DNA of 64,000 nt from Lytechinus pictus (taxonomy: Eukaryota). Numbering within the stretch: the first letter of the stretch is position 1; every line of letters begins with the position of its first letter. Shown piece after piece: positions 28,823 through 60,600 of this stretch. Both the position numbers and the translations under genes were made by a program. The stretch lies in assembly GCF_037042905.1 (NCBI RefSeq), contig NC_087251.1:39060001-39124000 (forward strand), read 5' to 3'. The notes under the pieces were generated by a model. It had not been told where the DNA came from and did no database searches. It was given only the letters and a program-made list of their open reading frames with translations.

Positions 28823-29756
28823 AGTGTATAGAGTAAATTAATTCTAAGGATCGATCATTTTTAAATCTCAAATGATTTCATATCAAAATGCATCGGGCTT
28901 TAAAACTAAATATTCATGTTTCAAGCTAGATCCAGAATTCGATTCGTCCTTGACTACAATNNNNNNNNNNNNNNNNNNNNNNNNNNNNNNNNNNNNNNNN
29001 NNNNNNNNNNNNNNNNNNNNNNNNNNNNNNNNNNNNNNNNNNNNNNNNNNNNNNNNNNNNNNNNNNNNNNNNNNNNNNNNNNNNNNNNNNNNNNNNNNNG
29101 TTTACATACACCCATGGAATTTAGTGAAATTTGTTCGCTTGCCAAACATCGTAAAATTTACTTTATCTTCAGAAAAAAATACCACCATGACGAATTTGGT
29201 ATCAAAATAATAAAAGAGCATGTTAATCTCTTTCACATAATTGGAATGCCATTGGGATTAAAGTATATTTCAGGTGGAATTATCTTTGAATAAAAAATAA
29301 TATTTGTTCCAAATGTATTATGTTTGTTGTTTTATTTTCAAACATCGTTTCATAGAAATATAAAATGTCAAATCTTTGATTTATATAACATTTTCTATCA
29401 TGATATGTCACCATTGAACAAAAAAGTGTAATAAAAAATTTTTGTGTTGAGAATTAACTAGGTGACAAATATGAAATGTTTTTGTTAAGTTTTTATTTTT
29501 GATTTTTCTAAAATATGAAGATTTGGGGGCAAAAATGACACCTAAATATTTTTTAGCAACTGATGACAAAGCAATGTAATGAAGGGGCATGACATACTCA
29601 CTTGTTTGATATCAAATTCGTCATGGTAGCACAAAATTTCATAAGATACTGTACATTTTATGATTTTTGGCAAGCGAACAAATTTTGATATGAAATCATT
29701 TGAGATTTAAAAATGATCGATCTTTAGAATTAATTTACTGGATTTACTCTACACTG
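28823..29756. mobile_element. MITE with long TIRs, spanning N gap 28960-29099
   Basis: agtaaattaattctaaggatcgatcatttttaaatctcaaatgatttcatatcaaaat is inverted at about 29682-29739. Confidence 0.6.
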
Positions 29757-33654: not shown

Positions 33655-36600
33655 CACTTTCCTCCCATACTTTAGTTTTCGGTGTCCCGAAACCTGAAGT
33701 TTTATCAGGCCACAAATCCAGTTTACTTTTGTTTTCTCTATTGCAGCTTAATGTAGCAGAAGAAAATACAACGTGCTGCAAGAAACAGAACGCATAAAAA
33801 AAAGAAAAAAAAGGAAAATTCTTATTTTAAAAGGACAAAAAATACAATATGTCTATATAAGAAGAAAAGAAAAGAAAAGAGAAAAAATGAAACAAGAAAN
33901 NNNNNNNNNNNNNNNNNNNNNNNNNNNNNNNNNNNNNNNNNNNNNNNNNNNNNNNNNNNNNNNNNNNNNNNNNNNNNNNNNNNNNNNNNNNNNNNNNNNN
34001 NNNNNNNNNNNNNNNNNNNNNNNNNNNNNNNNNNNNNNNNNNNNNNNNNNNNNNNNNNNNNNNNNNNNNNNNNNNNNNNNNNNNNNTGAAAATGAACAAA
34101 AGCTGTGGCAAAAATAGTCAATCCTGACTGGTTGCCAACCAAGGAAAGAAGAAGAAGAAGAAGAGGCTGCATGTGAAAAATCTAATTTATTTATTTTATT
34201 TGTCAGATAAAATGCAAGAAATACAATGTGAGTGTTTAGAGTATAAACATACCTCAGTTGCATGATGAGTAACATAAGAAAATGAAAATATGAAAATTGC
34301 TGCAAACATGTCCAAGTGGATAAAGTAGTACTTTGCAATAATAATTAAAACATAGAAAAAGGTGTGAATCAATCCGCAATGGAAAAAATACTTTTACAGA
34401 AATAATGCTAAATATGACAACAATCATAAACGCTGGTCATATTTAAAGATGATCACTTATTTTATGGAAGTTTATATTATAGATATATGGACTGCTTTGA
34501 GAGGCATGGTTGTTTCTAGAGGCTCAAGGGGACCGCAACGCGACTATGCCCGAGGGCTTTGCCCGAGGGCATGGTCTGGCCGATGCGGTACCCGCGAGCC
34601 GAATTGAAACAACCATGTCTCGAATATAAAAGCAGTCCATATATATTTTATGAACCGAATTATTAAACATAAACGTTAGGGCTTGGTCTAGGTTTAGATC
34701 AAGTAAAACTAAAACAAAAAAGCCTGCCCCTGGCCTAGGCCCAAGGCTAACGTAAGGTCTAGGCCCTTACTTAGCCCTGCCCTGAAGTTAGGTCTCAAAT
34801 CGAATATCAAAGCAGTTCCCGAGCAGTTCATACCGATAGGCCCTACTAGGCCTAGGCTAGATATTTTTAGGAACCAAATTAGGGTCTGATTCTGAATAGG
34901 GTCTAGGGCCTACAGTGTAGCTAGATCTAAAGTTCAGTCTTAAAATTTAGACTAGAGTATAATCTAACGTTAGATCTAGTCGACTAAACCTACGTCCTAA
35001 CGTTAGATCTAGAGTCTACTCTTAACTTCTAAGCTAACGACAATTAACATTAGATCTACCTGTCCTAACGTTGTCGTTTGTCAATACCTAACTGTCCCAG
35101 GCTAAGGTTAAGTAACGACATGAACGAGTTAAACGTTTATTGTTAGAAAGTGCAGTGACCGTCTAATCTTTTCACCTGACTCACCTTTTGCGAGCATGCA
35201 TTTGAGCGAACTTCCCCAAGACTTGATGATTGATATACATCCGTTATGTCCTTAATAAGCTAGTTTTATTTTCAATAAATGCCATATATTTTAACAGGAA
35301 TTAACAAGCAAAAGTCAAAGATCGGCATCGTTCCATCGATATGTCATATCCGTTGCGCGCACTTGCGCAATAAGCGCGTAAATGCGCGAATTGTTTAAAA
35401 CTTTCGATCAAATCGCGCGGATATTTATGGTATCCGTAATCACCGCAGAAAGCAACATTTTGCATGCAATCAAATGGGGATTTCAGCCAAATTTTGCTAT
35501 GCCCGTCGTTAAGGGGCGGATCAGGGGGCAACGGGCAGAAATCTTGTTAACTATGCCCGTTGCCCTTGGTTACCACCTTAGTTTGTTGTTTTGAAGGCAT
35601 GGTTGTTTACATGACCTCAGTTTTGACCAATCAGAGGAACGGATTATTCGACATTCTTAAAGAGAGGTTTATAAAAGAATATAAGGTTTAAGAAATAACA
35701 TAAAAGATTAAAAATGCGCCTCTTCGTATGGACTTTCCATAATCTTTTCTTTAATGAACTTATCTTCATTTGTAATGATTGTGATGGATTCGTAAGCTAT
35801 AGGCTTAATCTGTATCTTAAATTCAATATTAGCTGCAGGTTTTTTGTTTTGTTTCACTGTTTCAAATCCAACAATTAATTTTCATTGATTAAAATAAATC
35901 TCAGCAAAAAAAATAATTATAAGGAAAATAAAATAAAAATAAATAAATGATTTAGCATGTTTAACATCTTAGTTTTGTTTGTCTTGTTTTTTTTTTTGCT
36001 GAATGTTATTGAACACGTTTTTTACCTTACATAATTTCTTTTAAAGAAATTTGTTGTTTATTTTTAATGAGAAAGCATGAGGGGTCGGCTAAAGAGATAT
36101 AGTGCCGCCCATTTCAAGTATTTCAAGTTTATTTTTTTAATAGAAAAGGGGTGGGGATAAGACAGAGGGAGAATAGAAGAAAACATATTTTAAAAATATG
36201 ATTTGGCCCTATACATTACCTCCGGGAATAATACATGTACCCCGGAGAAGTTAAAATGACATCCGTTTTTGGTCGTCCTGCCGTGCAAAAAGACGACCTG
36301 AAATTGATGACAACTAGCCCCCATATAAAAAATAACTTGGCGCCATCCCAGATAAAATGCATCAGAGTGCAACCAAAAAAATGTTTAGAGGTGATATGTC
36401 AGTGTGGCTTGCCTTAAATGCATTTTCTCTCAATGCCGACGGTGGCGGGCGGTGTGCAAAGAAGATCATGCCTACGTAGGACATGTCTGGAGGTGTCTTT
36501 CCAAGGACCATTCTTCGTATCGCCCAAATCGGCTTTGTGAAACAGTTGAGCGATATCTCGTTCTTACGTAGAATGGTCCTACGAAAGACCCTTGCATGCA

Positions 36601-39600: not shown

Positions 39601-42600
39601 TGTTTAGAATCATTTCAAAATTACTTTACACTTAGCAAAATATTTTCAAGAATAAGCAAACGCAGAGAGAAAAAGTGATTTATGACATCATCAGCTCATG
39701 AATATTCATCATATCCCATGATACGGTGATGTCATTTTACGCAACTAGATTCACGCGAACAGTCGTTAAATTGACCTGAGTTTTTTTATATGCCATGATG
39801 TGAGTGTAGACATTATGCCCATGAAAGGCTTGTATCTTTAGTCTTAATATGAAATATAGGCCTACATGTATTTGAAAAGGGAATGGGCACTGAATAGTTC
39901 TCTCTCTCTCTCTTGATGTTATATTTGATTTGTTTTCTCTTTGTTTCCTGCCATCACTCTCTCCATCTCGACACTCGCTCCCCCTCTCTCTCTTTAATTC
40001 AATCAATAATTACATATTATTTAATCATTTTCAATTCCTCTCTGTGTTTTGTCCGTTTCTTCATTCTCTTTACTCGGTCTCCGAAAATATATCACAATAA
40101 TTTTGACTTGAGTTATAGGCCTACGCTGACACCTTCGTAATTTTGAAAGATTGGTATAATGACAATCATATATCACATATTACTCTATTTCCACCTCAAC
40201 ACTACTATATCAGAAGCGTAATGAGCAAAAAAAAAAGGTTTTGGAACGGCCCGCCATGTATAAACTAGTAGTCTCAAATTATCGGTGATTAGTTTTTGTC
40301 TCGCCCACCAGAGATGAAGGCGTGTGTATGGTGGGTAGTTGATTCTAATAAATGGGGTGAAAATAATCACAATGGATGGTCAATGTGACATTATATCGTT
40401 GAGTAATCTTGCCAATATTTATACATTTTTTTTCTCTTCATAGTTAATTTTTTTTTATCAAGCAATAACCATTAATGGATTTTCTGTCGACAAATTCGAG
40501 CCCATCATGCAATTTTAACATGATTTGTTTCCATTTTCTATGTTAAAGTCTTTAACTCCAAACTTCAAACATCAGCCAAAGCCTTGGAGATCTTTGTCGA
40601 AGGTCTTATAACAAAAGCATCGCAGGAAACCCTCTCAAGGAATGCAAAGACTCTTACCACGTCTCACATGTAAGTGATAGATGATTGTTAAAAAGATTTC
40701 ATGAATTTTGAGTGCACTATGGAGCATTCTGACGATGACACATGGAAGATATTTTATTCTGAGTTACAGAACAGGTTCAACGATGTAGCCAATAGCGAGT
40801 GTGTGTGCAAGTCACATGTTCATGCTTAAAGGGATGGTCCAGGCTGAAAATATTTACATGTACAGTACCAGTCAGCAATCTTTGAGTACACGCGGTGAGC
40901 CATTTCCGGCCGTCGCAGCGTATTGACACTCGAATGTCACGCTAGAGCACACTCTGTCATGTCTTCGCGTGTTCTGATTTTTGACACTCGGGGTGTGTGT
41001 ATTGTTTACCGAGTGACAAGTGTAGAAGTGACACTCGGTTGGCGCTTGTGTGTCCGCTCGCTCTAGCCAAGTGTCAAGTGTAAAAAATCATTGCAGGTTA
41101 CCAGAATTTTTGATGAAGAAATTGACTCGTTGAATATAAGTTGATTTGTGAAGAATTATATCGAATTGGACACTCTTTTATAATGCTTTTGCGACTATCG
41201 GTTTCACTTTTGGCATCAACGAGTCAAAAACAATGGAGAAGACGACAATACAGGTACTTAACACCAATAAAGGAACGTCTTTGAACTTCCCCGAAGCTTT
41301 TATAAGGGAACAATATTGATTATTGACTAGGCTTGTAAGTACAGTATTAGCATAGCCGCCGTTTATGAAACTAGGACAATAGGTAGGTAAGCTGCATGTG
41401 ATAAAATGATACAATATTAGGCGGGAGATGCGTGATGATGAACAGAGAAAAATAACACGTCAAAAAGGAGTTATGGAATTAGGGGTTATTATGCTCTAAC
41501 GAAACGCTGACTTATGACATCATGATTGACACTTTTTTTGAGGGGGGGGGGTGTATTGCAAAGAACATCCTCTTCAAATGCATTCATGTAAGCGTGGATT
41601 CTACATAGACAGAAAAATAGTTGAATGCTCAAGGAAGGATAAACTTAAAGTTTTTTATGAGGTCAAGATGGTCTCCTTTGTTTTCAAACTATACAACAAC
41701 GACGCCTAAAGGCCAATGAAAATCATCACAAATCCATGTCTTGAATGACTTTTCGAAAAATCTTAAACGAAATGTCATTTATTCTCTTTGTAAAACATTC
41801 TTTATGCAATGCACACAAGGAAAAGTATAGTACTTGTAGCGCATTAATCATTGCATGACTTAGACTTCAAGTCGTAATCTTCGTTTTAATAAAAAGAGAC
41901 ATATGATTTTACCATGTTTACATGCATGAAGGTTTGTCCGAATCACTCTGTTTTTACAATAATATTCTATCGTCAATAATCAATGGCAGTGTTCACTTTC
42001 CTTCACTGGATTGGAATGATTGGAATGTCTATTTATAATTCTGAAACAATGAATTCGATGGTATTTCGAATACATAGGCCCGAATACTTTCTGCAGAGAA
42101 GGAGTGGGGGGGGGGGTAATCTTACGTTTTTATTACGTCATAATAAATTTCTCATCTTTTTCTTAAATCCATAACTCGGACCTACTCAGGAATGTTCGGG
42201 ATTTTATGTCATTCGTTTTGGCCAAACCAGTGAAAGAACTATAATTGACCATAAAAGAAAAACAACTTGATCCCCTTTAACCTGAATCTGACTTTTCCCT
42301 TTATTACAATCATCAGCAGGAACATGATTTTAACTTTGATATAGACTCTGTCAGAGAACTTTTGTTTTCTTGGTATTCTTTTGTGGCCGCTTCACAGACT
42401 TTTCATCCAGTTTGTCGAAATGAGGGATGATTGGTACGCGGCATTTCTTTTGCTTTTCATTGGCGGGTGAAACCTGAATGGGACAATGGGCGTAATCATG
42501 CACGACCCAAGCGGTGATTGGGCGAATCTTTAAATGGGCGGGAAATGAAGCTGTGATCAAGGGTCATTATTACAGTGAATAGATCTATGATCTGTTATGA

Positions 42601-45600
42601 GAGAATGAAAGGGGGGAAAACTAGCGTTATTCAGTCTTTTTGGTGTATTTATGTTAGTAGCGTTATTCAGTCTTGATAATTCCCAACCATTTTCCTATTC
42701 AGAATAAGGCAATATAAAATTAGGAAAATTAATTGACACATTATTAACCAATCTACATGACTATGATATTGAATATTCTACTACATTTTTTTTTAAATAA
42801 TAAAATTATTGTGAAATGAATTGAAACTATTAACGAATCTATATGATATTTGATATTCTAGTACATGTACATAACATTGAAAAGTCTTTGTTTTAATTAT
42901 TGTGGGAGCTATACTTAATAATTCATAAGTATACGCGGGTTCTTCTAACACAGAACACGAACAGATGAAGGGGTATTATGTTGATGGTTTGAAGGTTTGT
43001 GCTCAGCTGCCTGTGCTAGATTTAAATACAATGTTCAAATTAATTTGAAGATGACAATAAAAAGTAACACATCATCATGGATAAGACATACATGTAGGAA
43101 TCTTTGCATGATGAATATTCATGATTTGGTAAACCAGGAGAGAGGAGGGAAGTAATTAAGAAAGCTGAAGAGAAGTCCAATAGAGAAAGGAATTTTATAA
43201 TAAATGAGGGATGCAAGGAATGAAGGGTATATAGATGAGGGTACCAAAGGAGATGGGGATAACAAAGATAAATGAGGATAAAAGGCAAGAAGGGTAATGG
43301 AGACTGAAGAAAGGAGAAATGTAAATTAGCAGGGGCGGTGGGGGGGCTTTAGCCCCCACTTTAAAAAAAAAAACGTGCACAAAAACGTAAAAAATTACCA
43401 TAGGATTGTGATTTTTTGCATGATCAGCCCCCCCCCCCCCCACTTTGAAAACCGTTCCGCGGCCCCTGATCTGCTGATTAGGGTTATTTGGAGTATAGCA
43501 ATGAGATTAAAAGGTAATCCCTAATTACTAAACAAAAACTGCTATAAACTTGAATAATGTACAAAATAGCTCCCAACAATAGCTTGATATCAATCCAACT
43601 CGATTATGCCCCCCCCCCCAAAGAAAAAGTAATGATGTGAATCCTTTTTTGCTCTGACTACTCGAGTAAGAACCCTGGTACTCGGGAATAATATGTGAAG
43701 GCCTACATGTATATTAGCAACATCAAGATGCCTGTCGCTTAACTTCGCAATGTATTTGAAATTACAGGACTTGGCTTAATAATATATGCTACTTATTCCT
43801 TTCCCTTCCAGGGTGCTTGTGAAAAATTCTCCTGTATATTCATGTATAGGCACTAATTCCCCTCAGTGCAACGCCATCACTTCATCATTTCAGCTAATAT
43901 GTCAATGAGAATCCTATCTTCATGTCTGAATTAAAGAAATAAATCATAGAGCATTGGACTCATATCGCAAAGTTGTACATATAAGTTCAATGCAATGAAT
44001 ACATCAGTTGAATTGCGCAGGAAATGCGCTGATGTACATTCTATGATCTCCAGTATATATCGTATACTATTATTAGCATCATATTACTGAAAATGAACAA
44101 ATCTTAGTGCTTTTCATCAGAACCTTCAAAAATCCCCTAAAATGCACGAAAAATCCCCCAATTTATTTTAATCCCCTAATATTTTACCATCCCCAAGTCT
44201 TTTCAAATTCTCCAAATCTGGGGATGAAAATCCCCAAATAGTAACACTTGAGTCTATCTCAACTTCTCTTGATCCATTGCAATCTAGCCAGCAAGGCCGA
44301 GCGATCGCGCGCGGGGACTCCTTTGATTTCATTGTTTTGTTTTGTATACTAGTAATAGTCTTCAGCGTTTAGGCTTCCTTTTATTATTGCAAAATTGAAT
44401 GGGATGGGCGGAGCCAAATTCAGACAACAATAGCGCGCGGCGCGCCGCGATAGGCCAGCGCCAGGGGCCGGGGTTAAGCCCAAAGGTTAAGCCTATGGGG
44501 CCAGGTTAGCTGACAAGCCGAACCAGATCTTGAATCTCTATAAATACTCTACAAATGCTCTTGAAACCTTACAATCAATTCTGACTTTCGTCAAGACGTT
44601 ATCTCATCGCATTTACTTAATTTTACCTACACCACGGAATTAACCTGGTCCTCGTCGAACTCGTAGTTTGGTAGACCTGTACTAAGAGTTCGAGTCCGAC
44701 TGAGACACATCAGCCCTCCACTGCAGCAACTTGCGCCTGCCGATTGGTACTGTATCTGCTCTGCGGAGCTGAGACTACTGTCAGTACTGAGGCACCTAAC
44801 GACGTGACGCCGACGCAATCGCCATGGTAATCCAGTACCAGGCACGAGACCCAGAGAGCAGAATTTGGATGGCAGTCACCGTTTTGTCACGGAACGATTT
44901 GAGAGCCAAAGTCAGGTAATTCACTTTTGTTTCGACTTAACCCATTCCAATAAAAAAAGCATGCACTGTAAAAATGAAGTTCTAATTTAGCACTTACAGT
45001 GCGTGTAATAGTGAATGTACTACTTACTAACTTGGTACGAGTGCTGATTTTCTAGTTTAAAATTTGAACTAGAAAATCAGCACTCGTAGTGCAGTCACTT
45101 TACAAGCACTGTAACTAAGTAAGTGCTTAATTAGCATTTCATTTTTTACAGTGCATAGGCCTAGATCTAACGTTAGGGCCATAAGATAACGATGCAAATT
45201 TCATCAAAATCAAAATCTCGTCTCACTGACACCGGCAGTACTAATATTATTAGTGCTCACTCGATAAACATGTAGGCACTAGGTCTAGATCTATGCTATT
45301 TCTTTGATTTTTCCGTGCTTTGCATCTGAATTTAATGAATATTTTTAGTGTTTAAATGCTTTTCGGATATTACATGTACATGTTTATTCAATATAACTTT
45401 TTGTTGAGGTGGAATTGTCGGTTCAATTTGATGGAATATCATGAAATGTAGATATTGCTTTCAATATGGCAAGGAAATCATTTGTTGGTTGTACAATGTA
45501 CCAAACAAATTACTTACATGTAGTCTTCAGATTTGCTTTCGTCATGATTTTTGATTTGCTTTTATTATATATATTATGATTATTGGCCATCCGATTCTTG

Positions 45601-48600
45601 ATGTTGCTCCGACAAAATAGGGGAAATTGCTGGGGGGAAAAATTAATGTGAACAAACGCCACACCACTCATAAACTGTGTTGTGAATTTAAGCAAAACTT
45701 TAAAATGCCATAAGTTTCTTATTTCACGTCGGCTCATAATGACATGAAATTTTAATATTTCCAAAGTTTCTAACTGTTTCAAGCTGGCACAGGTTTATGC
45801 ATACTTTAACTGTTGAATCCGCCGCACTTATATACATTTTCATCGTTTTTTCATTCCAGATGGACAAACTACAGAAACATCATTTCGGATATTCCTACCA
45901 CGGACCTGAGGGTTTCTCTTTTGAAAAGGCTGCTACCTCGTGAACTGAATAAGGAACTGTGGCCTGGCACTTCGCCGTTCAATCTGCAATTGGGGGACAA
46001 ATTTCAACTTGTAAAAGGCGACGGTTCAATGGGCGAGATTGCTACTGTCAGGACAAACGACCCCTTTCGAGGAATAGTTAGTATTTACATTTGTTGATTA
46101 AGTTATACAAATGCATTCTGCATGAGCAAATTAATTGTTGTATATTTGTCACACTAAATGATACAGTATGCAACCACAGGAGATTAATTTCAAGTTGTGT
46201 GCTTGCCTACATAAGTGGTGTTTTACTTAAGTAAAATATAAATGAAGTGTTCTTTCGTTTAATGAATCTAAAATTGTTCATTAGATTAGAAATTGATCTT
46301 ACATCCATCCGAATTCCCTCGTTATTGCCACTTTATTTCATATCCACTGCTCTGCCTCTAAGTTTTGTGTAGATTTTTATTTACATATGTTGCACAATAT
46401 CCATGGTTCTGGTTTTATAATGTTTCAATCGATAATATAAACATCTCATTTCTGATCGAAATCTAAATTTAGATTGAAAGTGATTCTTAGTATTATTCAT
46501 GTACAGGTGTACACTGTGTTAACTTTCACATTTCACTCTCTTTTTATTAGATAACTACAACTGAACACGGAGGAAGGCAGTTTAGGTACGAGCATATTGC
46601 AGAGGCTCCAGAGCAAGATACCAATGTGCCTGTTCCTGTGCAACCTCCAAGGAAGCGTCCCCAGGTTGCTGATGCAGGTGACTGTGTTGAACCTTCAAGG
46701 AAACTTCAGAGAACATCAGGGAAGCAGGTTAGAAAATCAAATTTTTTGAGATGCAGCTTAAAGTTTAAACATTTTTCAAGTGTTAGAAAACAGCAAGAAA
46801 GTTGAAAGTTTTCATAAGAGGTCACTATGGGTGTGGGAATTCCAAAATTGGCTGCATAGACCTACAGATTGTACATTTACATGTGACTTTGAAATTGTCA
46901 AAGGTATGATTTTACAATTTCGCTGAAGTATTGATAAAAGTACAAGAATATTGTATTCTATATAATAATGACATTAATTCTGAAAAAACTTATGCACATT
47001 AAGATGCTCCTCTATTTTTGAAAAACAAATTGGTGCCTTTTCACTGCCGTAATTCAAATGATATCAAACTAAAGAAATTCTCTTTCTTTTCACAGAGTGC
47101 AGCAGGACCGATTAGAACAAAGAAAACTGCACCTCCACGGCCAGCAGCACCAACCTCCCAAGGCTACAACTAAAGTGACAAAGAAGGTAGGTTCATAGTA
47201 TGTATATTAATTTTTTACCCATTTGTGTTTTGCAGGGGGGGGGGTGAGTATCCTGCACCACTCTTCTGGTAAAAGAAAAGAAGTTATCACCAAGTACATC
47301 AAACAAGTTGTTCTGACTTAGAAAAATCTGATATTGTTAATATGCCGAGGGCTAATGACTTTCGTGCCTGTAGTGGTGTTCTATTTTTTTGTCATTTGTT
47401 TTTATTTCGGGGGGGGGGGGGGGTAGGCAATTGATTTATAATAATTTATTTACTACAATATTGGTAGTGATCAGAATTCCCACATGTAGGATTTCAGATT
47501 AAATAAATGAGTTGAATTAAACCAGCTACTTGATTACTTTTTTTATCAATATATTTAATATGATTAAAAGTCAAGTCCACCCCAGGGAAAAAAATGACTT
47601 GAATAAATAGAGAAAAATCAAACTAGCATAGTGCTGAAAATTTCATCAAAATCGGATGTGAAATAAGAAAGTTATGACATTTTAAAGATTCGTTTATTTT
47701 TCACAAAACAGTGATATGCACATCTAGGTGACTCAGTCGATGATGTCCATCACTCACTATTTCTTTTTTTTTATTGTTTGAATAATACAATATTTCATTT
47801 TTTATAGATTTGACAATAAGTACCAACTTGACTGAACCATATAGTATTAAACAATGGTAATTCCACATGTTCAGGGAGGAATTAATCGTTGTATCACTTG
47901 AAAATGAGGAGAAAATTTGAATATTTCATATAATAAAATACAAAAGAAATAGTGATTGGATAATGTCATCATCTGTCTCCTCATTTGCATACCGACCAGG
48001 GGCCCGTTGCATAAAAAATTTTACCTGAGAAAACTCAGGTTGTTTTTACCGGAGTTTTTGCCCTGTGTTAAAGTCAATGGCAGAAATCAGACTAACCTTA
48101 GTTTTCAGTTTTTACCAGAGTTTTCTCAGGTAAAAAGTTTTATGCAACAGGCCCCAGGATGTGCATAAACTGTGTTGTGAAATTAGGCGACACTTTAAAA
48201 TGTCATAATTTTCTTATTTTACATCCGATTTTGATGAAATTTTCAGTGTTATGTTTGTTGGATTTTCTCTTTTTATTCAAATCAAGTTTTTGTTAGGGTG
48301 GACTTGTCATTTAAAGGGAGATTGATTGTAAAACAAACATACCTGTGTTTCAAAATTTTATGTAACATCTTAAATTGATTATTCTACTTCTCTTTTTGTC
48401 TCCTTGCACAGAAAGCAACCATGATTGCCGGCCAGGCCCCACGCCCTGCTGTCAACTCCAAAGAAGGAGCAATGATGTACCACACCAAAACACCAATTGA
48501 AGACCTCGTAGCATTGGGTTTGCAGAGATTGGAAGAGATGAGGGAAAGCAGAGAGGTACCGCCAGAACCAACTGCAACTGCTCCTCGTCAACCTCCACCA

Positions 48601-51600
48601 CCCCCATCAGCACCTCGAGAACTGGTTCCACCACCTCCACCACCCCCACCAGCTGTAGAAGTAGCAGCCGTTCCTCGATCACCACCAGCCCCACCTCAAC
48701 GACGACCATCGCCACCCAGGGTACCGCCACTCCAACCAGCTCCTCGATCACCAGCATCAGTTCCTCAATCAGCACCCTGACTGCAACCGTCACCCAGAGG
48801 GCCATCACCCCCGCCATCTCCTCGATCACCAACGCCACCACCCAGACAAGCGCCACCTCGACGACAACCATCACCACCCAGAGGGCTACCACTCCGACCA
48901 GTTCCTCGATCACCAACACCACCCAGACGACCACCACCTCGAGGACCACCACCACCATCACCACCCAGAGGGCTACCACTCCGACGAGCTCCTCGATCAC
49001 CAACACCACCACCCAGACGACCACCACCTCGATCACCAACACCACCACCCAGACGACCACCACCTCGATCACCAACACCACCCAGACGACCACCACCTCG
49101 AGGACCACCAGCACCACGACGGCCGCCACCACCAGCACCACGACGGCCGCCACCACCAGCACCACGACGGCCGCCACCACCAGCACCACGATGGCCGCCA
49201 CCACCACCTGAACAGGAAGCACCGGTACCCCCTGCAGTGCTTTCACGAATTGCTGAAGACCCAGTTGTGGGTTTTTTGTGGGACAAGATTGTTGAGCTGA
49301 AGGAACAAGACAGAAGGAAAACCCAACAGATCAGCCGCATGGAGTTGGAAGTGAACCACCTGAGGAGTCTGCACAGCCAGAGTAATGTCAGATCAAACCG
49401 GGTCTGTAGTAGGGATGAAATCACAAGGCGGCTAGAGTTCGTCACAGTTGACGGCAAGAGAACGATGCAAGTGACAAAGCAGGTGATGGACTCTCTGCTC
49501 CCATTTGCCCCTTGCCACAGGGACGTATCGAGGAGACTGGGGAATCTTCTATTCCTGAGAGAAGAAAGGATCAACAGAAATGTGATAGGCATAAGGAATC
49601 CTGCTATGGACCCAGAGAGGATGGGGGCCATTCGCCGTGCAACGTTTGATTTGTGCCCGACAGGTGGAGAAGGCCAGGAACAAGTCTGGAAGAGGTGTGT
49701 GAAAGGGATCGACGCACAGAATCGTAACCTTAAAAGACGGACAGTGTGAGGCACAGTGACTTCCATCGCGACTATCAATTTGATGCACATGTTCATTTGT
49801 CATGATGACAAAGTGAAAATCTACTATTCTTGAAAATAAGTTCTTAAAATGTGTGCTATCCCGTAAAATAATTATTATTTAAAGAAATGAGCAAGACAGG
49901 CTATTTTTACATGTAGGTCACAGTTAACCGTTTTTCTATTTATAATTTGCCTTACACGTTTTCGTCGTTTTTTGTGAATACTACTTTTTTAATGCCTTTT
50001 TATGTAACTCATGCGATTTTTCATGTTATAGTCATATTGCAATTATTAGACTGTTGCAATGTACTACATGTATGACTTTTGCATCAAAATTTATTTAAGT
50101 GAAATATAAATAGTCCCATACAATTTTCATTCTATTAGGATAGTTAAGACAGACAGCCCCTTTTAGGTCATAATTCATCATATCTATAAATTACCCTACA
50201 ATTTTCACGTAAAATTTTCTTATTGATGAAAAATATAATATATAAACTCTTTTGAAATGGTCCATACGAGATTACACGATATATTTTATGAAGTTTATTT
50301 CAGGAAATGATCGATGTTTTTAGAGAATAATTGAATCATTTTAGATTTGTGAATTACGGTACATCTTTTTGCAATACATTTGTATGTAACTCAGGCGATT
50401 ACATCTGTCATATGCCAGTTGACTGTTGTACTTTTTGTCATGAAACAATCTGTAATAAAGTGAGTTTTTCACTGATTTTTTATTATTAATTGAATTAAAG
50501 AATGTTTATATGCAATGTCAATGGAGTGTATTAGATGTCTTTTGTCAGCTTATCAAAATAGTAGCATCATAAAATTGATTAAATACAAACTCAAGTAATG
50601 TTACTTTTGATATTCATTAATTTTCTTTCTTTCGGGAGAAGATGTAAATCATATCTAAATACCAAAGCATTGTTGCAAAACGACTTATGTAGGGCAAAAA
50701 AAAGAGAAAGACAGAAGGAGAACTAAAGGAATAAAAGGGGGAGAAGTAAAAGAAGGAAGGGAGGGGAAAAAAGGAAAGGGGGGGAAAAAGAAAGGAAGGG
50801 AGAGGGGGAAGGAAAGGGGTATATAGAAAAGGAGAAAGAAACGAAAGGAATGGAAGATGGGAAAGAAAAGGAAGGAAAAGAGAATATTAAGACATGAAAG
50901 GGAGAGGGGGGAAGAGAGAAAGAAAAGGAGAAGGGAAAGGGAGAGACGGAAGAAATAGCAAAGGAGAAAAATGCTGGGGGGAGAAGAGGACGAAACTTAG
51001 GGAAAGAAAAGGGGGAGCGAATGATTATAAAACACACGAGAGAGTTGATTGCCCATTTCATATCTTTAAATACTTTCTCCGTATATTTCTACCAAAATTT
51101 GTTATGCTTCATGAAGTTGTTTTCCTGGACCTGTAAGTGAAAGTGAGAAGAGATGGGCGGTGTGGTGTGGTGATTGGAGAAGAGCGAGGGAGAGAGAAAC
51201 ACGAGATTGATGGATAGGGTCTAACCATACTAAATGTCAAATCGTTGCTCCTCCCCCCCCGCTTCTTCTGCTTCTTTATCTCTCGCTCGATCTCCCCAAT
51301 CATTCTCCGGTTATCCGTCCCTTTATCTAACCCCACCCCCCCCCTGTATACTCTTCTCCCTCCGCAATTTTGTTTTTTACTCGCCTGAGCGAAAAAAGAC
51401 ACTTTTCCATCATTGTCCATGATGATGGTTTAATAGCAATATCCAACTTGTCTACTATCATTTGGTCTACCATCAGTTCTTCCACTATCCACATGGTATT
51501 TTTGCCATTTCGTCCGATAACCATTTGGTCCATAATAGCCATTTAGCCCGGCCATTTAGTCATTAAACCATTTGGTTATGGGTGAAATAAATGAAAAGAA

Positions 51601-54600
51601 ATTGCTATTAGACCAACTGGTTATATGACTGAGATGAAATGGTCAAAGACAAACTGGTGATTAGACGAAAATGATGATTGGACTAAATGACTGTTAGACT
51701 AAATGAAGGTGGATCATTTTGACAGAGACTTGGGAATTGTTTTTTTTAGTGGGATTGCTGATGTAAATGCTGATGTAAATTTGAAAAGCAAAAAAAAAGT
51801 CATTTTCAACTACAAAATAGAGGTCAAACTGGTCCTGAGAAATAAGAAATGGAAAAAAAAAGTTTCTCTACAAAATGAAGTACATTGAACAGAAAATATT
51901 ACAGGAATATATCTATTATCTCTATCATGTATACATTGTTACAATTGAAACGTTGAGGTGAACGCCTGTAGCTACAGTGTACATTTACATGTACATGTAA
52001 GTAGCGATCCCCTGGCACGGGTCAATTAATTACGCCGTCTTGCACGTTTCGCGAATAATAGACAGAGGTGTGAAAAATACAATAAGCAGCTAACAATGGG
52101 AATAATAGAACGCAGTAAACAGAAGGATGTTTTGTCGTGTCGCGGCTTTAGTGATTTGAATTGAATTTATTATAACGTATCCACTCGTCAATGGAAGACT
52201 GGAAGTGCCCCCCCCCCCCTGGGGGGGGGGGGGCACTTACTTTAGAAGCTTATTGATGCAACTCTCAAGTTCAGAAATGAGTATTAAATTCGTAGGAAAT
52301 ATGCGGGGTTGGGGTGTGAAGGAATGATCATAGGTTATTCGATATCTATAATTGAGAGATGGAGAAAATTAGTCTTAGTATTATGTGTATAGGCCCTATA
52401 AAGTTTGTGGATCAGATCATGCTGAGGAAAATAAGCATTAAAAAAAACAGATCTTAGAGAGAAAGGTTCCTGCAAGCCCAGGGTAGACTTGGACCAGCAT
52501 GAAAAAGGTATAGGGGGCAAATTTCTGATATTGTTGGCGTACCTGGTTTATTGGCCGTTCGTTCTCAGTATAGGGGTCGAACCTTGCACAAACTGAAGAG
52601 ATCGAGTTGCAGCTCCCTGAGCTCCGTCATTCATATACGGCGTCTGATGACAATTCATAGGTGGAAAGGCCGTAAATGGAGCCTCTTTTAGTCTTGGCTT
52701 TGAGTTTGTCTTGATGAGAAACACTCAGGAAAATCATAAACCGCTTATTCTTCTAAAAGAATTTATTAATTCCGGTGCTGTCTTTTAGTTTCATAAGGGC
52801 CGCCGCAAATCGATCTGCAACCCGATTTTGGAATAAAACGTACATGTACTAGAATTTTTTCCTACATGTAACATCGAGACATGGAATATCTTACTGTATA
52901 ATGTTCTAAATCATCAAATCGGTGGCCTTTAGTAAAGATTACATACATGTATGCATCAATCTCATCAATTTACCACTGACAGACGTATAATGTATGTAGT
53001 TAACTAGTTATGTTAAGATAAAAAGTGTCTCTTACTTGCCCATACTCCATCATCATCGCTACATGTCATACTCATTATCGCCATTTCATCATAACCTTCA
53101 AAATTCTTGTGCTAATGCATCATTCAGTTTGCTCTCTCTTCCCCCACATACATGTATTATCAGAGCAGCTTTATCTCGATTGCAAAATATATTTTATTTC
53201 AAGACTGTTTGCAGCAAAAGCTGAATTGTACAGAACTTTTACATAAAAAAAAAACCATAACAGTATCAAAATAGAATTATACAAATACACAGAGCATGAA
53301 GAAATATGCAATCATTAATACTTGGGGGTTAATATGAATGAACATAATATTTTCAAATATGAGTAATTGCAGAAGTTTCAAAATTCGCTTAAGATATTCA
53401 TATTTCAAAATTCTATTCTTTTTCAGTTTATAATGTTTTTGTTTATTTTTCTTGATGCGCCATGAGCACCGAAAGGCGGACCTGTGTGCTATAAGTAGCA
53501 ACCATTATTGTACAATCACTTAAATCATCGTAATCATCAGCACATCATGAACCTTCTCGTCCTTATCATCATCATAACACCATTTTCACACCACTCATCA
53601 GTATCATCGTTTATAGGATACCATCATTATTTCTTATTATCATTATCATCATATTATTGCAGACGAACAAGGAATACAAATTATGAGGAGGACAAAAAGA
53701 GGAAGAGGAAAAGGACTAAGTGAGAATAAAAAGAAGGGATTTACATATATAGAAGAGAAGGGAAGACAAAACTACAAAATAATAGACGAAAATAACATGC
53801 TGGAACTAATGAGATATTTATTTTAAACAAGCTTTAATGATAACAATTATGATAATATATATTGGTATACAAATGGCAATGATATCAACAAGAGTAATAA
53901 ATAATTATGCAAGCAAAATAGCTCCGAGACCATAGGAGCCTTGATGACACTATCAAATGTATCACGTTAAGAGTTGACAAGGAAAATAACATAGCCTACA
54001 TGAACATGTGTACGTACATGCAGACGATTGTGATTGGGTCGAATTAGGAAGAAACGATTGTGAGTACAAATAATGCTAGATCTTTCTTAATGTGGGCACC
54101 TGTTAATTCCTTCGTTCACGTTGAAATTTTGAACTGCTTTTGCATGACCTGAGCATGATTAATTTTTTTTTTTTTGGGGGGGGGTAACTAGGGTCTAGTC
54201 AAGCATGCAAAATCAACCACTCTCGCACACCGGGGAACTGGACCGGTAAACCGGGAGCGCCGCACCGTGGTCCGTCCCAAGCCGGGTGGCATGCGTGCTC
54301 TCCGTCATCGCGCCGCAAGTGCAGCATTAGAGCAGCGGCCGGTGCCTCGCTCCCTGTGTCCACCTCGCACCGAGTTTACCTATCAAAACGCAATGCATGT
54401 ACTGTACGCGAAAGCAACTAGAACTTGACCTCTTTTGTTTGGATTTGTCGAGTGTAAAAACCGCATATGACACGCTGGTCACTTGACCATGACGCATGGC
54501 TCGATCACAAAAGATCGACACCGAGTGTAACACGCTATTGACACGAGAGCAAATGACACGCGAAGAGAAATAGTCGCACCTGAGGGCGTGTATTCGCGCG

Positions 54601-57600
54601 TGTTACACACATCCGGGTTGGATGGCTCGCCGCGTGACCTCGTGTACTCAAAGATTGCTGGCTGGTACTGTATATCTATAAAAATAGAGTAAAATTCCCA
54701 GAGCAAAATGCTGAGAAGTTTCATCAAAATCGGATAACAAATAACGAAGTTATTGAATTTTAAAGTTTATCAATATTTTGTGAAAACAGTCATATGCACA
54801 TCGTCATGAATATTCATTAGGTGGGCTGATGATGTCACATCCCCACTTTCCTTTTTCTTATGTTATTACATGAAATCATAAATGTTTCATTATTTCATAC
54901 ATGTGTAAATGATGTGTCTCCATTGTGATGAAATAAGTTGCGGCAATAAATAATAATGCACTCAATCAGTTGTCAATCCAATTGTTTTAGTTCTTGGTAG
55001 AAAAATTTTGAATAAACCTAATTTCATATAATAAAATACAAAAGAACAAGTGGGGATATGACATCATCAGCCCACCTAATGAATATTCATAAAGACATGC
55101 CTAGAACTATTTCATCGGAATAATGCAAATCTTTAAACTTCAATAATTATTTGTTATCCGATTTTGATCAAATTTTCAGCATTTTGCTTTGTGAATTTTA
55201 CTCTATTTATTGACATATAAATATCTCCAGCCTGGACCATCCCTTTAAATTCTTAGCAACTTTCCAGTCATGAGTACTGTGCATTTTGGGTGCATCATTT
55301 TCCCCATTGCATATAAATTGCATATAAAAGCTGAGATGCCATCTGAAACCTGTTTCAAAGAAAAGAGTATGGAATTAATTTTGATGTGCTCTCAATAGGT
55401 GTGGATACTAGATATGCCTGTGATGTCATAGTATAAAGGCCTGTTTCATGAAACATGGACTTAAATGTAATCAAGTACAGTTGTGCTCATTACATTAATA
55501 TAGAGGTTGACCTTAAACAGCCTTTCACGATCATAACATTTGCTTTTCAGATGAAAATTCTTCCATATTTTTGTTTTTTTCCACAACATGCAAAAAAGGG
55601 CATGTTAACAGTTCAGAAACATTCATACCCATTCTATAACTGCATGTTAATAATCAGTGGCATATATCCTTTATTTGCAATGAATCCATCATTGCAAATA
55701 AAGGCTATAGTCCATTTATTATTAACTTGCAGTTACATCAGGGGTATGAATTTATTTAAAGAATAAAATGAGAACCTGTATTAGAAATACATATGAAAAA
55801 AAAAAAAATGTCGGGGTATGAAAGCTTATATCCAGTGGCGTACCTAGGATTTTTCACAGGGGAGGCAAAACCGTCCGCCAAAAAATTTGACAAGCAAAAA
55901 AAAAAAAAAGGTCTTCAATCACAAATGAAGGATTTCGTACCAGAAAAAAATTTGACAAGCAAAAAAAAAGAAAAAAAAAAAAGAGCTTCAAGCTAGTCAG
56001 GGGGGGGGGCAATAAAGGTCTTCAAGCTCGTCAGGGGGGGCAAAAAAGGTCTTTCAAGCTCGTCAGGGGGGGGGCAGGGATACGTCCTTTGCATGGGTTG
56101 TGGCTCGTCAGGGGGGGCAGACTGCCCCCTCTGCCCCCCCCCCCCCCCCCCGTAGGTACGCTAGTGCTTATATCTCTAACTATGTGACACTAGTTTCAGG
56201 TCACATGATCAAGGTCAAAGGTCATTTAGGGTCAACACACTTTGACAGTTGTGGTATTAATTTGAAAATGTAACCTAGGTTAAAATTTTGAAGACTTCAG
56301 ACAATTTTGTAAGTCCCCATTCCATAAAACTTTGATTATCAGTAATTGGCAAATGGACAAATATAATATCAGGTCAGAAGTTATTTGAGGTCAACGAACT
56401 TGGGATTTTATTATCAAATGAAATTTGAGGGGGTTTTTCATCTTTTTTTAAAAATGTATTCATCTTGGTTGTTTTCAAAGTCAGCACTGCTGCTATGTAG
56501 AATTGTGTTATGCAGGTACTTGTACTGTTTTGCACGTGTTACCTTTTTTTTTTCATACTTTTGCCCCAATGGGCAAGTTTATTTACAAAAAAAGAACACG
56601 TTTACAGAAGTCAAATTATAAACATTATTCAAACAAATGTTTCAACATACTCCATTTCAAATTAAAATCTTTCCTTTTTCCATTCAGATCACAAATGTAA
56701 CATTAATCCAAATAATAATTTTGTATTACCTTCTTAATCTTCTTAAAATCAGGTACAGTCTTGTTCAACCTCGAGAAATATAATTGTTGTTTTACTAAAA
56801 TGATAATACAATTCAGGGCATCATTTCGCTTTTCTTTATATCCAAACAAAATATTCTGTGGAGTAAATGTAAGAATAAACATAGGAGATGATATCCACGT
56901 TTCTATTTTACTCCAAATATTTCTACTAAAATTACAGAAGTAAAAGAAGTGTTCAATTGTTTCCTTTACAGTATAACAAAATGTACAGCACTCAGTATTG
57001 GTGATCTTTAGTTTGAATAAAATATCATTTAAAAACACAATTCTATTGAAAACTTTGTATTGGAAATACTTTATCCGAATGTCAGTTGTAAATCTGAAAA
57101 TCATCCTATTAAATTCCGGTATTTTAGTGTGATCCAAAATAATACATGTATTTGAATTTTTTCCCCATTTTGCTGCAATAGTTTTGGCTGAATCTTTATT
57201 TTCTATCAAAAGTTTATATATACTTTTACACCCCTTTTTATCACTCATTATAGGAGAAATATAAGGCATAACAAATGGTTCACATATTCTATGGTCTAGA
57301 TTTTGAAATTTTCGATTAAACACACATCTTAGAGCCTGAGAAATTAAAAAATATTCCAAAACAATGACTTTTAAACCAAACTTAGATTCACATTCAGTTA
57401 AAGATATAATATTTCCTTCTCGATCTATTAAATCATTAATAAATCTTATACCCTTTTCTTGCCAGTATTTAAAATAAACAGACTTTCCATCTATTTGTAT
57501 TTTACTATTTTTCCATAAAGGTTGCGCTAGCCAATTGATATTTTCAGATTTTTGAAATATCGAAAATAGCATGGCAAAAAACTCTTTCCAAAATGGATTA

Positions 57601-60600
57601 CTCATCTTTTCCGATATGTTATAAAAATATTCATCTCCATAAAACAGATGGAAAGGCTGTCCCAAAGAGAATCCTAATAGACTTTCTACGTCATCACATT
57701 TTCTCAATAGAATTCTTCTCAACCATGTCAATTTTAATGCTTTGTTAAAACAATCTATATCTATCATTTTCAATCCCCCTTCTTCGTATGAACCAAGTAT
57801 TTGTTCCCTACTAATTTTGTCTGGTTTTCCATTCCATACAAATTGAAAAAATTTAACTTTAATATTTTTCATTAGTTGAGCCGATGGACTGGGGATTGAA
57901 AGAAAAAGGTGATTGAATTGAGGCAATAAAAGGGATTTAGCCACTGTAATTCTACCCAAAGGTGTAATATTTCTCTTCGACCATGAAATCATCTGTCTTT
58001 TCAATTTATCAAAAATCCTATCGTAATTGAAATCTGGGATCTTGTTAATATTCACATGAAAATCTGTACCAAGATAGCGAAAATAAGTATCCTTTATCAA
58101 GTTTACTTCTAATTCAATGTCTAAACTTGTCTTTTTCAGGTTACCCAAAAAAATAATTTGCGTCTTTTGTGAATTGAGTTTAAGTCCAGTAAATTGAGTA
58201 AAAAAAGAAATCATCTCCAACACTTTTTGAAAAGACTTATTTGAGCCAGAAATGAATAAAGCCGTATCATCGGCATATTGAAGTATTTTGAATTCTCTTT
58301 TGTTTACGCTGATTCCCTCAAACTGGTTTGAATTTCTTATCCACAATGCAAGAATTTCCACACACATAATGAAAAGGTAAGGAGAAATTGGATCCCCTTG
58401 TTTACAGCCTCTTTGGATATTAAATCTGTGTGACAATTGAGAATTAACAATAACGCTTGAGTAAGCATTACTGTGCAAGACATCCACCCATCTCTGAAAT
58501 GACGGACCCACCCCAAAAAACGAAAGAACCTTTTGAATGAATTCATGGGAAATACTATCGAACGCCTTTTCGAAATCTAATAGCATTAAAGTACAAGGTA
58601 AATTTTGCTTTTCCGCTAAAGCAATGATATCGTATATTATTCTAATATTTTCCCCAATAAAACGACTAGGTAAAAATCCTTTCTGATCTGTGTGAATGAC
58701 TACTGATAATACCTTTCGTAACCTATTTGCAAGACATGTAGATAAAATTTTGTATACAACATTAAGAAGAGATATCGGTCTCCAATTTTTAATAAAATGA
58801 CGGGGCTTATTACCTTTAGGAATTAAAGTTATAAGACCTAAGTTTTGTGAAGGAGATAATTCACCAGTCAAATAAGCATTTTTGACACTTCGTCACAAAT
58901 AAATTCCTATATCATTAATAAAATACTTTAAAAATTCTGCTGTAAAGCCGTCTTGACCGGGCGATTTACCAATTTTAATCTGTTTAACTGCATCAAGTAT
59001 TTCTGAATAACGTATATCCCCTTCTAAAACCTCACTTTCTTGTGTAAACATCCTTACTTTATTCAAAGGAATCATAGCAAACAATCTTTCAGCCTCTGAT
59101 ACTGGTTGAAATGTATACAAATCCTTAAAATAAAGATATACTTCTTGTAAAATATCTTCTTGTTGATCAATTAAACAGTTGTTTTTATCGATCAATCTTA
59201 TAATTGTCTTTTCCACTGATCTCTGTTTTTCTAAATTCAAAAAAAAAAAATTCAAAAAAAAAAAAAACGTGTTACCTGGTTCGAAGAATGTAATTCTTCT
59301 TTAACATTCAACATGTCTCTACATTTTCACACTAGTAGCATCATTTTCATGATAGTTTCTCTTATCTCTCCTCCAGAAAGCAATGCATTGAGCAAGAAAA
59401 CAAGTTTGACTTCTTGAAGGATCTGGTGGAAAATGTACCCACCATTTCATGCGAAGATGACGACTCAAACAGTGGATCAATACAATCTGATAAGCTTCCA
59501 AATTCAAGGTGAGATTGGATATTATGCAATTGCAATTCAGCCTCAGATGCAACATTATCTTTGCCTGTCATGTGAACTAAAAATCTTTTTTCATTTTTTT
59601 AGAAATACTTTTTTTTTTCAAAAATTTCAAAATTTCACTGAAAATTATGAAACCTGCCAAGTTATTCTAGTTATAAAGGATTACTTATTCATGAAATATT
59701 CAAAATAATTATAATTCTTAATTGTAATTCAAAGTTTGTACCAACAATGAAGGCTGATTCCGAATGGGCAGTGCAGGCTGAAAATAATATCTAGATTAAT
59801 GAAATAAAAATTCTCCTAGTAAAATGCTGAAAATTTCCTCACAATTTGGTAACATATACCGGTAATAAAGTTATTTAATTTCAAATTTTTAAAGCAATAT
59901 TTTGTGAAAACAGTAATACATGTATGCACACCTTTATCAGGTTGGCTGATGATGACATGTTTCCACTTTCCTTTTTTCTTATGTAATTACATGAAATCAT
60001 ATATATTTTATATTTTCATACATATGTGTATGATATGTCTCCATTGTTACAGAATACATTTCAGCAATGATTATAGGCATCAAATCAGTTGTCAATCCAA
60101 TTTTTTGTTCATTCTTGGTGGACAAATTTTTAGTAAATATAATGGGGATATCATATGGCATCATCAGATTGCTTTAGCGTATGGTCACGAGACATGCATA
60201 AAACTGTTTCACCAACATAATGCCAAACTTTAGAATGTCATCGCCTACATGTAACTTTGTTATTCACATTTCCAATTTTAATTAAAGGTCCAGTATTTTT
60301 GTTTGTCTGATTTTACTTTATTCAAATGAAATTATTTTCAGCCTGAGTAGCCTACCCATTTATTGTGATGCAAATTCATGAGGTATGGAGTTAGGCTAAT
60401 TCTATCCAGATATCACTTTCTCTATTTGCCCAATCATACCCTCTGTCCTTGAAAACATAATAGTATACTTTCAAGTACTAAAGCCTTTCTATTTTTTGTT
60501 TTTAGGGAGGGGGAGGGGTTCCAGCAACCCTTCTGCTGCCCCTGTAGCACAGCCCCATTGATAATGATACACATTTTCCCATAAATCGTAGCAAGTTATC

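Follow-up and report, generated by a model that had tools for sequence, protein, structure and literature searches.

A putative non-autonomous transposable element with a decaying BEN-domain cassette in intron 3 of DRAP1 of Lytechinus pictus

We analysed a 64,000-nucleotide stretch of the Lytechinus pictus genome (RefSeq assembly GCF_037042905.1, contig NC_087251.1, positions 39,060,001 to 39,124,000 of the forward strand; hereafter the window, numbered from its first letter), in which intron 3 of the gene DRAP1 holds a 13.8-kb segment bounded by inverted repeats and enclosing a multi-exon gene with a BEN domain in its last exon. The account that we favour, at slightly better than an even chance, is that this segment is an old non-autonomous cut-and-paste element with ends of the Tc1/mariner-pogo type, which carried a BEN cassette into the DRAP1 intron and is now decaying. 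The evidence comes from the structure of the ends and of the insertion point, from mirrored motifs inside both ends, from the state of the enclosed gene, and from comparison with a related species and with other echinoderm BEN genes.

Results

Ends of the element and insertion into an older MITE

The element spans 40863-54670 (13,808 bp) on the + strand, that of DRAP1, starts about 190 bp downstream of the DRAP1 exon-3 donor and makes up 13.8 kb of the 18.7 kb of intron 3. Its ends read CAGTACCAG..., 5'-CAGTA...TACTG-3' overall, and form a 30-nt terminal inverted repeat (TIR; 40863-40892 against 54641-54670) with 29/30 identity and one mismatch, which grows to about 34-36 nt when a small indel is allowed. 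These are the only two copies of the repeat in the window, and 100 shuffles searched with up to 3 mismatches over 30 nt yielded no comparable match. The element lies within a miniature inverted-repeat transposable element (MITE), and the ends and their surroundings are arranged as follows.

40576-40669, + strand: DRAP1 exon 3, before the host intron; encodes AKALEIFVEG...TSH and ends in phase 2
40826-40862, no strand: left arm of the host MITE, its outer portion up to and including the left TA (40861-62)
40863-40898, + strand: left TIR, beginning 5'-CAGTACC, in its extended form
40863-41112, + strand: left subterminal region; contains ACAC[TG]CG motifs, among them three + strand copies of ACACTCG
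54421-54670, - strand: right subterminal region; contains ACAC[TG]CG motifs, among them two - strand copies of ACACTCG
54635-54670, - strand: right TIR, ending ...GGTACTG-3'
54671-55248, no strand: right TA (54671-72) and remainder of the host MITE, delimited by inverted-repeat pairing and arm alignment
59377-59508, + strand: DRAP1 exon 4, after the host intron; begins KQCIEQENKFDFLKDL...

A TA dinucleotide stands directly outside each end, and the 3-bp flanks are unlike (GTA and TAT). Both flanks proved to come from one and the same MITE arm: 40826-40861 pairs with 55213-55248 (92%), 54671-54720 pairs with 55170-55219, and the left flank joined to position 54673 onward aligns with the entire opposite (right) arm of the MITE. 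The whole 13.8 kb therefore went into an older MITE at a single position. Split-arm alignments made for one, two or no original TA scored 188, 186 and 190, nearly equal values that arise because the MITE arms carry small indels right at the insertion, and a duplication of the TA is consistent with the flanks and unproven. Candidate MITE copies at 7345 and 25561 were found on inspection not to be copies of the MITE, so the window holds no independent empty site. The left target TA is also the final TA of the palindrome TACATGTA at 40853-40862. A simple 6-bp difference is absent from the opposite MITE arm at this place, so that the palindrome finds no support there as a Tc1-type excision footprint.

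The same observations bear on an alternative in which nothing here was ever mobile, the inverted ends being a product of chance or the remains of separate small elements with ordinary intron between them. That only one copy is seen, and that the TA duplication is unprovable from the MITE arms, would suit this explanation. It is contradicted by the empty result of the shuffles, by flanks that are the halves of one MITE arm into which 13.8 kb entered at one point, and by an interior (described next) that has a mirrored motif common to both ends and no partner TIRs; we consider it very improbable.

Mirrored subterminal motifs and the search for a transposase

The motif ACAC[TG]CG occurs 16 times in the window, and 9 of the 16 occurrences fall within the outer 250 bp of the two ends, where ACACTCG is mirrored between the strands. 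Looser searches for degenerate inner TIRs, made with both 60-nt ends, matched only the ends themselves. The element is therefore not a pair of small elements, and both ends are parts of one kind of element. A scan of metagenome contigs with the TIR gave 0 matches, and the element resembles other parts of the window over about 0.8 kb only, consisting of a nested MITE and low-complexity sequence.

Pfam searches detected no transposase domain in 26 non-exon open reading frames (ORFs) of the element, in the five exon pieces of its gene or in the long BEN ORF. Ten large ORFs elsewhere in the window likewise gave no transposase, the sole mobile-element match being the reverse transcriptase of a long interspersed nuclear element (LINE). 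No small RNA genes were found in the element by Rfam and tRNA scans.

Much of what the preliminary description of this DNA had said about the element is borne out by these results: it had proposed a non-autonomous transposon with 29/30 TIRs and no transposase gene, inserted cleanly into a MITE TIR, and the TIRs, mirrored motifs, TA flanks, one-piece insertion and Pfam results agree with each of these points. It had itself raised the possibility that the two ends belong to separate small MITEs, for which no inner partner TIRs exist in the window. Its TA target-site duplication survives as a TA on both sides, the duplication itself being left unproven by the alignment scores.

The interior also invites assignment to a different superfamily, such as the CMC (CACTA/Mirage/Chapaev) type with a 2-bp duplication. 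CMC-type elements are commonly large and equipped with subterminal repeats and accessory genes, and the 13.8-kb length, subterminal arrays and multi-exon accessory gene would all be at home there; CAGTA is, in addition, one base from CACTA. Target duplications of CMC elements span 2-4 bp (PMC4482050), a range that takes in the TA found here. The termini themselves are not CACTA/CACTG, and the Pfam searches of the element revealed no remnant of a CMC transposase. A TA combined with CAGT ends is instead the classic signature of Tc1 and pogo elements, whose TIRs are short and start 5'-CAGT. We therefore think a CMC-type origin unlikely, and prefer Tc1/mariner-pogo-type ends.

Some features of composition were noted across the element. 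A near-perfect palindrome with 26-nt arms (45036-45088, intron 1) lies within a short multi-copy repeat that is abundant in RNA runs, and one RNA contig skips 45003-45119 (GT..AG ends) with 19 other letters in place. Runs of 9-15 G or C occur at 52200-52235, 41541, 43428, 43609, 47233, 47410 and 54173, the first including a C12/G12 hairpin-forming palindrome at 52208-52232.

The enclosed gene falls into two frames and its BEN frame is interrupted

Five exons with GT..AG borders can be drawn in the element and joined into 635 codons. In the list below ORF1 denotes the upstream frame and ORF2 the frame of the large last exon, which runs from a proline/arginine-rich repeat through a coiled coil to the BEN domain.

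44290-44480, + strand: CpG-rich DNA ahead of exon 1, possibly a promoter judging by its sequence
44824-44915, + strand: exon 1, ORF1; ATG at 44824, a start shared with the public gene call; no RNA support
45860-46076, + strand: exon 2, ORF1; in the public gene call; zero depth in all RNA runs examined
46551-46727, + strand: exon 3, ORF1; last ~50 nt present in the X1 contig
47096-47186, + strand: exon 4 as in the observed transcript; ORF1 stop TAA at 47171-73
47564-48314, no strand: nested MITE in intron 4, related by family to the host MITE; multi-copy, with very high depth in RNA runs
48412-49749, + strand: exon 5, ORF2; ATG at 48421, stop at 49747-49; RNA contigs begin at its acceptor
48560-49210, + strand: proline/arginine-rich low-complexity region with 24-87-bp tandem repeats
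48778-48780, + strand: in-frame TGA breaking ORF2 upstream of BEN; CGA in organism B
49261-49389, + strand: coiled coil, a predicted long helix before BEN (helix residues 21-63 of the 182-aa query)
49408-49746, + strand: BEN domain, by profile, fold model and relatives
49694-49697, + strand: cryptic phase-2 donor AG|GT in the BEN exon, used by the RefSeq model XP_054759196.1 to reach DRAP1 exon 4

Whether the two halves of the gene could be translated as one protein depends on exon 4, which has two acceptors 7 nt apart. AG 47094-95 (exon from 47096) directly follows the polypyrimidine tract and closes the upstream frame after 187 codons; AG 47101-02 (exon from 47103) is the acceptor that an in-frame fusion of ORF1 to BEN requires. 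In the one RNA contig that spans exons 3, 4 and 5 (run X1, 332 nt, depth 5.42) the exon-5 part starts at the exon-5 acceptor and is preceded by 142 further letters. Its binned depths of 1.38, 1.79 and 0.74 agree with those predicted for acceptor 47096 (1.376, 1.788 and 0.743) and fit acceptor 47103 more poorly (about 1.6, 1.5 and 0.74). This depth fit indicates that introns 3 and 4 were spliced and that acceptor 47096 was used. The public gene call on the same assembly, a 187-aa product ending at 47173, implies the same acceptor. The observed mRNA thus contains ORF1 (187 aa) followed, 22 nt downstream and in another phase, by the ORF2 frame, whose ATG at 48421 is in good context.

ORF2 is in turn broken by the TGA at 48778. 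In a contig from a related species (organism B, run X5) this position is C, giving CGA instead of TGA, and the stop looks like a CpG transition in the lineage of the window. Comparison of exon 5 with organism B listed 16 differences, 12 nonsynonymous and 4 synonymous with the stop-codon site counted. The BEN part differs at 5 of 119 residues in the RefSeq individual, in which the DRAP1 exons are identical. By these substitutions the BEN frame looks unconstrained in recent time.

Signs of expression are few. Depth was zero on all exons in two raw-read runs from rRNA-depleted (ribosomal RNA-depleted) libraries, exons 1-2 had no RNA support, and neither AATAAA nor ATTAAA occurs within 650 nt past the stop. 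The left end (40863-41500) had word shares of 0.63 and 0.37 in two runs of study P1 labelled 'RNA?', and the introns of the element's gene had zero depth in another run of that study. The left-end signal may represent DRAP1 pre-mRNA, a transcript from the element's end, or DNA in the libraries.

The C-terminal domain is a BEN domain

The Pfam BEN profile (PF10523) scored the C-terminal ORF alone at 19.9 bits, below the 23.2 cut-off. An exhaustive phmmer search with the BEN ORF returned 87 relatives; ten of these were scanned and 10/10 matched Pfam BEN, all above the cut-off except the locus's own model. A profile of 16 sequences (the query and 15 relatives) matched, among solved structures, the fourth BEN domain of BEND3 (BEN4; 1.2e-9) and BANP (2e-5). 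An AlphaFold model (predicted local distance difference test, pLDDT, 91) begins with a long helix, after which come a hairpin and helices, and its 19 best Foldseek matches in the PDB were all BEN domains (template modelling score by target up to 0.69). Because profile matches, fold model and structural matches agree, the BEN identity of the domain is secure.

The N-terminal part gave no such agreement. Exons 1-4 searched singly had no Pfam match, the spliced 187-aa public product has no Pfam match on record, exon 2 had neither a PDB sequence match nor a homologue, and Atlas feature scores for an N-terminal reader were weak (about 0.55). A tandem Tudor/chromo-barrel reader in the N-terminal 125 residues, considered as a candidate, thus found no support in any of these sources.

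Copy number and age

In a catalogue of 5.8 billion proteins, which includes the gene calls of this assembly, the BEN exon product had just two matches, itself and the RefSeq model for this locus. Among the called proteins of 177-563 aa in this catalogue there was no other that resembled it. In the organism-B run the word share was 0.29 for the left end and 0.27 for the BEN exon, and organism-B contigs also cover the introns at about 96-97% identity. Since left end and BEN exon have like shares and the introns are covered, the whole element is an old one that both related species share. Two other organisms had runs with 5-14% of the left-end words, which could reflect related ends or an unrelated short repeat.

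We can now weigh another reading of the gene, close to that of the preliminary description: that it encodes a working Tudor-like plus BEN regulator of a large, uncharacterised, TA-targeting family of cargo elements, and binds their subterminal repeats. The coherent ends and motif arrays are in keeping with this, as is the in-frame fusion made possible by AG 47101-02; the nearest solved BEN domains bind CG motifs resembling ACACGCG and ACACTCG, and an ORF with the same proline-rich, coiled-coil and BEN parts, 66% identical, exists in another source (L003, see below). The observed splice nevertheless yields two frames, of which the BEN frame is cut short by a premature stop and shows neutral substitution. 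Searches of Pfam, of the PDB and for homologues lend the N-terminus no support, the catalogue contains the BEN exon once, and expression was zero in the two RNA raw-read runs. We regard this reading as quite unlikely. Of the gene as first described, then, the five GT..AG exons and the BEN domain stand. The single reader-like plus BEN protein is not supported, its halves lying in different frames by virtue of acceptor 47096 and ORF2 being broken at 48778-80; the reader-like N-terminus is likewise unsupported, and the proposed poly(A) signal unconfirmed. A working chromatin regulator of the element's own is unproven, given the premature stop and the neutral-looking substitutions, and so is a large family, given a BEN exon that is single in the catalogue and a window with no second TIR pair.

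A database model joins the BEN exon to DRAP1

Among annotated proteins the closest is XP_054759196.1 of Lytechinus pictus, whose DRAP1 exons are identical to those of the window. This RefSeq model (306 aa) is a chimera of 49339-49695, 59377-59508 and 63757-63900, and comprises the coiled coil, most of BEN (without its last helix) and the C-terminal half of DRAP1. As depicted in this database model, the BEN exon may still be able to lend DRAP1 a splice donor. A second route into the host gene was noted: the acceptor of the element's exon 2 (45860) is in phase 2, like the end of DRAP1 exon 3 (40669), and a splice from the histone-fold exon of DRAP1 to exons 2-3-4 of the element would be in frame. 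No RNA support for a DRAP1-exon 2-3-4 splice was found.

BEN cassettes in introns of other echinoderm genes

The nearest BEN relatives are all echinoderm proteins, and this BEN subfamily occurs across echinoderms. The best match in Patiria miniata has three BEN modules and lies in an SmB/LSM intron on the same strand as its host, with one gene model fusing the two. In this cassette (L001) inverted 340-bp arms (7984-8320 and 15816-16147) enclose the BEN gene, near TH1, and contain CAGTCA seven times on the + strand in the left arm and seven times on the - strand in the right. A second Patiria locus (L002, 12500-13500 and 21500-22500) has the same arrangement and the same neighbour genes, and is possibly a haplotig of the first. 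From their sequence the arms look like decayed transposon ends; no clean termini or target duplication could be defined for them.

In Asterias rubens (L007, 10001-16426) a PRCC-BEN isoform splices the first PRCC exons to one intronic exon of 2.1 kb with two BEN domains, and the PRCC intron around this exon showed no convincing TIRs. A near-identical PRCC-BEN protein is present in Asterias amurensis, and the isoform probably occurs in Patiria miniata too, where one protein resembles it at the N-terminus. The architecture of the locus studied here recurs in a 998-bp contig (L003, 297-944; ENA assembly ERZ27290689) that encodes a proline-rich region, coiled coil and BEN domain, the last 66% identical, which shows the module to be conserved beyond Lytechinus. 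An alignment headed by the long Patiria protein, used to look for full-length relatives, was dominated by low-complexity words and returned only that protein itself.

From one lineage to another, like cassettes occupy introns of different nuclear genes, which suggests a mobile cassette. Among the cassettes compared, the DRAP1 locus is the sole one with clear transposon ends. We found no paper in the literature linking BEN domains to DNA transposons in echinoderms.

A further alternative is that a small TA element captured a cellular BEN gene, or that composite ends enclosed one, and that the gene plays no part in transposition. Non-autonomous DNA transposons of other superfamilies (Pack-MULEs, CACTA) are well known to capture genes; the subfamily includes conserved host isoforms, namely PRCC-BEN in two starfish genera, and the introns and CpG-rich upstream region of the gene are as in cellular genes. 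What tells against capture is that no parent copy was found among the called proteins of 177-563 aa in the catalogue, that no inner TIRs mark a two-element composite, and that the relatives of different lineages sit in different host introns, one of them between inverted arrays, a distribution that fits a self-moving cassette. We give capture a small but appreciable share of the probability.

Other features of the window

A LINE ORF of 722 aa with reverse transcriptase and zf-RVT domains lies at 56703-58871 (- strand), in DRAP1 intron 3 downstream of the element, with shorter fragments of zf-RVT at 17046-17453 and 32652-33173. A large serine-/acidic-rich ORF is present in two near-identical copies, at 7937-8785 and 26153-27214 (+ strand), which are about 18.2 kb apart and both situated in GC-rich islands; the pair appears to result from a recent segmental duplication or from duplication of an exon of the upstream gene. 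The assembly has gaps close by, at 28961-29099 and 33900-34086.

Discussion

Taken together, these results lead us to favour, with the modest confidence given at the outset, an old and decaying non-autonomous element as the vehicle of the BEN cassette in DRAP1. Such an element would have been moved by a transposase supplied in trans, for which the TIRs and the mirrored ACAC(T/G)CG subterminal repeats were the probable recognition sites. It landed in a MITE arm within DRAP1 intron 3, on the sense strand, bringing as cargo a multi-exon gene whose large last exon comprises a proline-rich region, coiled coil and BEN domain. Decay is seen in the use of acceptor 47096, closing ORF1 at 187 codons, and in the CGA-to-TGA change that put a stop in the BEN frame. 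While intact, the BEN protein may have served as an accessory factor or repressor by binding the CG-containing motifs in the element's own subterminal regions.

Several points weigh against this account. There is no second copy of the ends in the window or of the gene in the protein catalogue, and the organism-B reads give the presence of the element, not its insertion site. The MITE arms do not prove a duplication of the TA. A length of 13.8 kb is far above the usual size of Tc1/mariner elements, and no transposase ties the ends to any superfamily, so that membership, suggested here by the ends, cannot be fixed. Binding of BEN to the subterminal motifs, finally, would be an extrapolation from resemblance, since the BEND3 motif CCCACGCG and the BANP motif TCTCG do no more than resemble the repeats found here.

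A broader proposal can be framed, tentatively. Echinoderm BEN cassettes would be native cargo of a TA-targeting lineage whose landings in introns, in the sense orientation, repeatedly gave rise to host-BEN fusions or nested genes (DRAP1 here, SmB and PRCC in starfish), with BEN binding ACAC(T/G)CG and the DRAP1 locus being the first caught with its transposon ends. Taken as a whole we think this chain of propositions unlikely. If true, it would provide a vehicle for otherwise unexplained intronic BEN cassettes in unrelated housekeeping genes of several echinoderm classes; a terminal exon with a DNA-binding domain would offer a direct exon-shuffling route to new transcription-factor isoforms; and the cargo and size range of TA-targeting cut-and-paste elements would be widened. 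As it stands the locus is one dead copy, with no family, transposase or activity shown.

Comparison with known systems

The element is most like Tc1/mariner-pogo (IS630-Tc1-mariner) elements in its TA flanks, in TIRs of about 30 nt that start 5'-CAGT(A), in its end motifs and AT-rich TA target and, as regards their non-autonomous members, in having no transposase of its own. It departs from them in being 5-10 times the usual size of about 1-3 kb and in carrying a multi-exon gene unrelated to transposases.

With the CMC elements, in particular En/Spm (CACTA), whose accessory protein TnpA binds subterminal repeats, it shares large size, subterminal motif arrays and a spliced gene for a DNA-binding accessory protein. 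The motif of maize TnpA is CCGACACTCTTA, which has GACACTC in common with the motif here. It differs in its CAGTA...TACTG termini, which are not CACTA/CACTG, in flanks of 2 bp (TA) rather than 3 bp, in having BEN as the accessory domain and in having no CMC transposase.

Two-gene elements of the PHIS group (PIF/Harbinger, ISL2EU, Spy) encode a separate DNA-binding protein (Myb-like) beside the transposase. Their target duplications are TWA, AT, CWG, ANT or none (PMC4482050), whereas the flanks here are TA and no PHIS transposase is present. ISL2EU, considered for its 2-bp duplication, was ruled out because that duplication is AT within A|AT|T (PMC4482050).

The closest solved relatives of the BEN domain, by profile and fold, are BEND3 BEN4 and BANP, with template modelling scores by target of 0.63-0.69. 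BEND3 binds CCCACGCG, and BANP binds TCTCG within TCTCGCGAGA, TCTCG(CGAGA) (PMC10206803); these CG-containing motifs resemble ACACGCG and ACACTCG. Identity to either protein is 19-25%, and the protein here differs in combining a proline-rich repeat and coiled coil with one BEN domain.

The PRCC and SmB cassettes of starfish belong to the same BEN subfamily and have the same layout, a large terminal BEN exon on the sense strand of an intron in a nuclear housekeeping gene, with gene models that fuse BEN to host exons (here XP_054759196.1). PRCC-BEN is conserved across starfish genera, whereas the copy in the DRAP1 intron is broken, yet retains TIRs and TA flanks.

Cosby et al. (2021) reportedly described host-transposase fusion genes that arise by splicing into intronic transposons. 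Here the BEN domain would belong to an accessory or cargo gene rather than being the transposase's own domain, and the fusion is a database model; what the two situations have in common is a transposon-borne DNA-binding module placed in an intron and open to host splicing.

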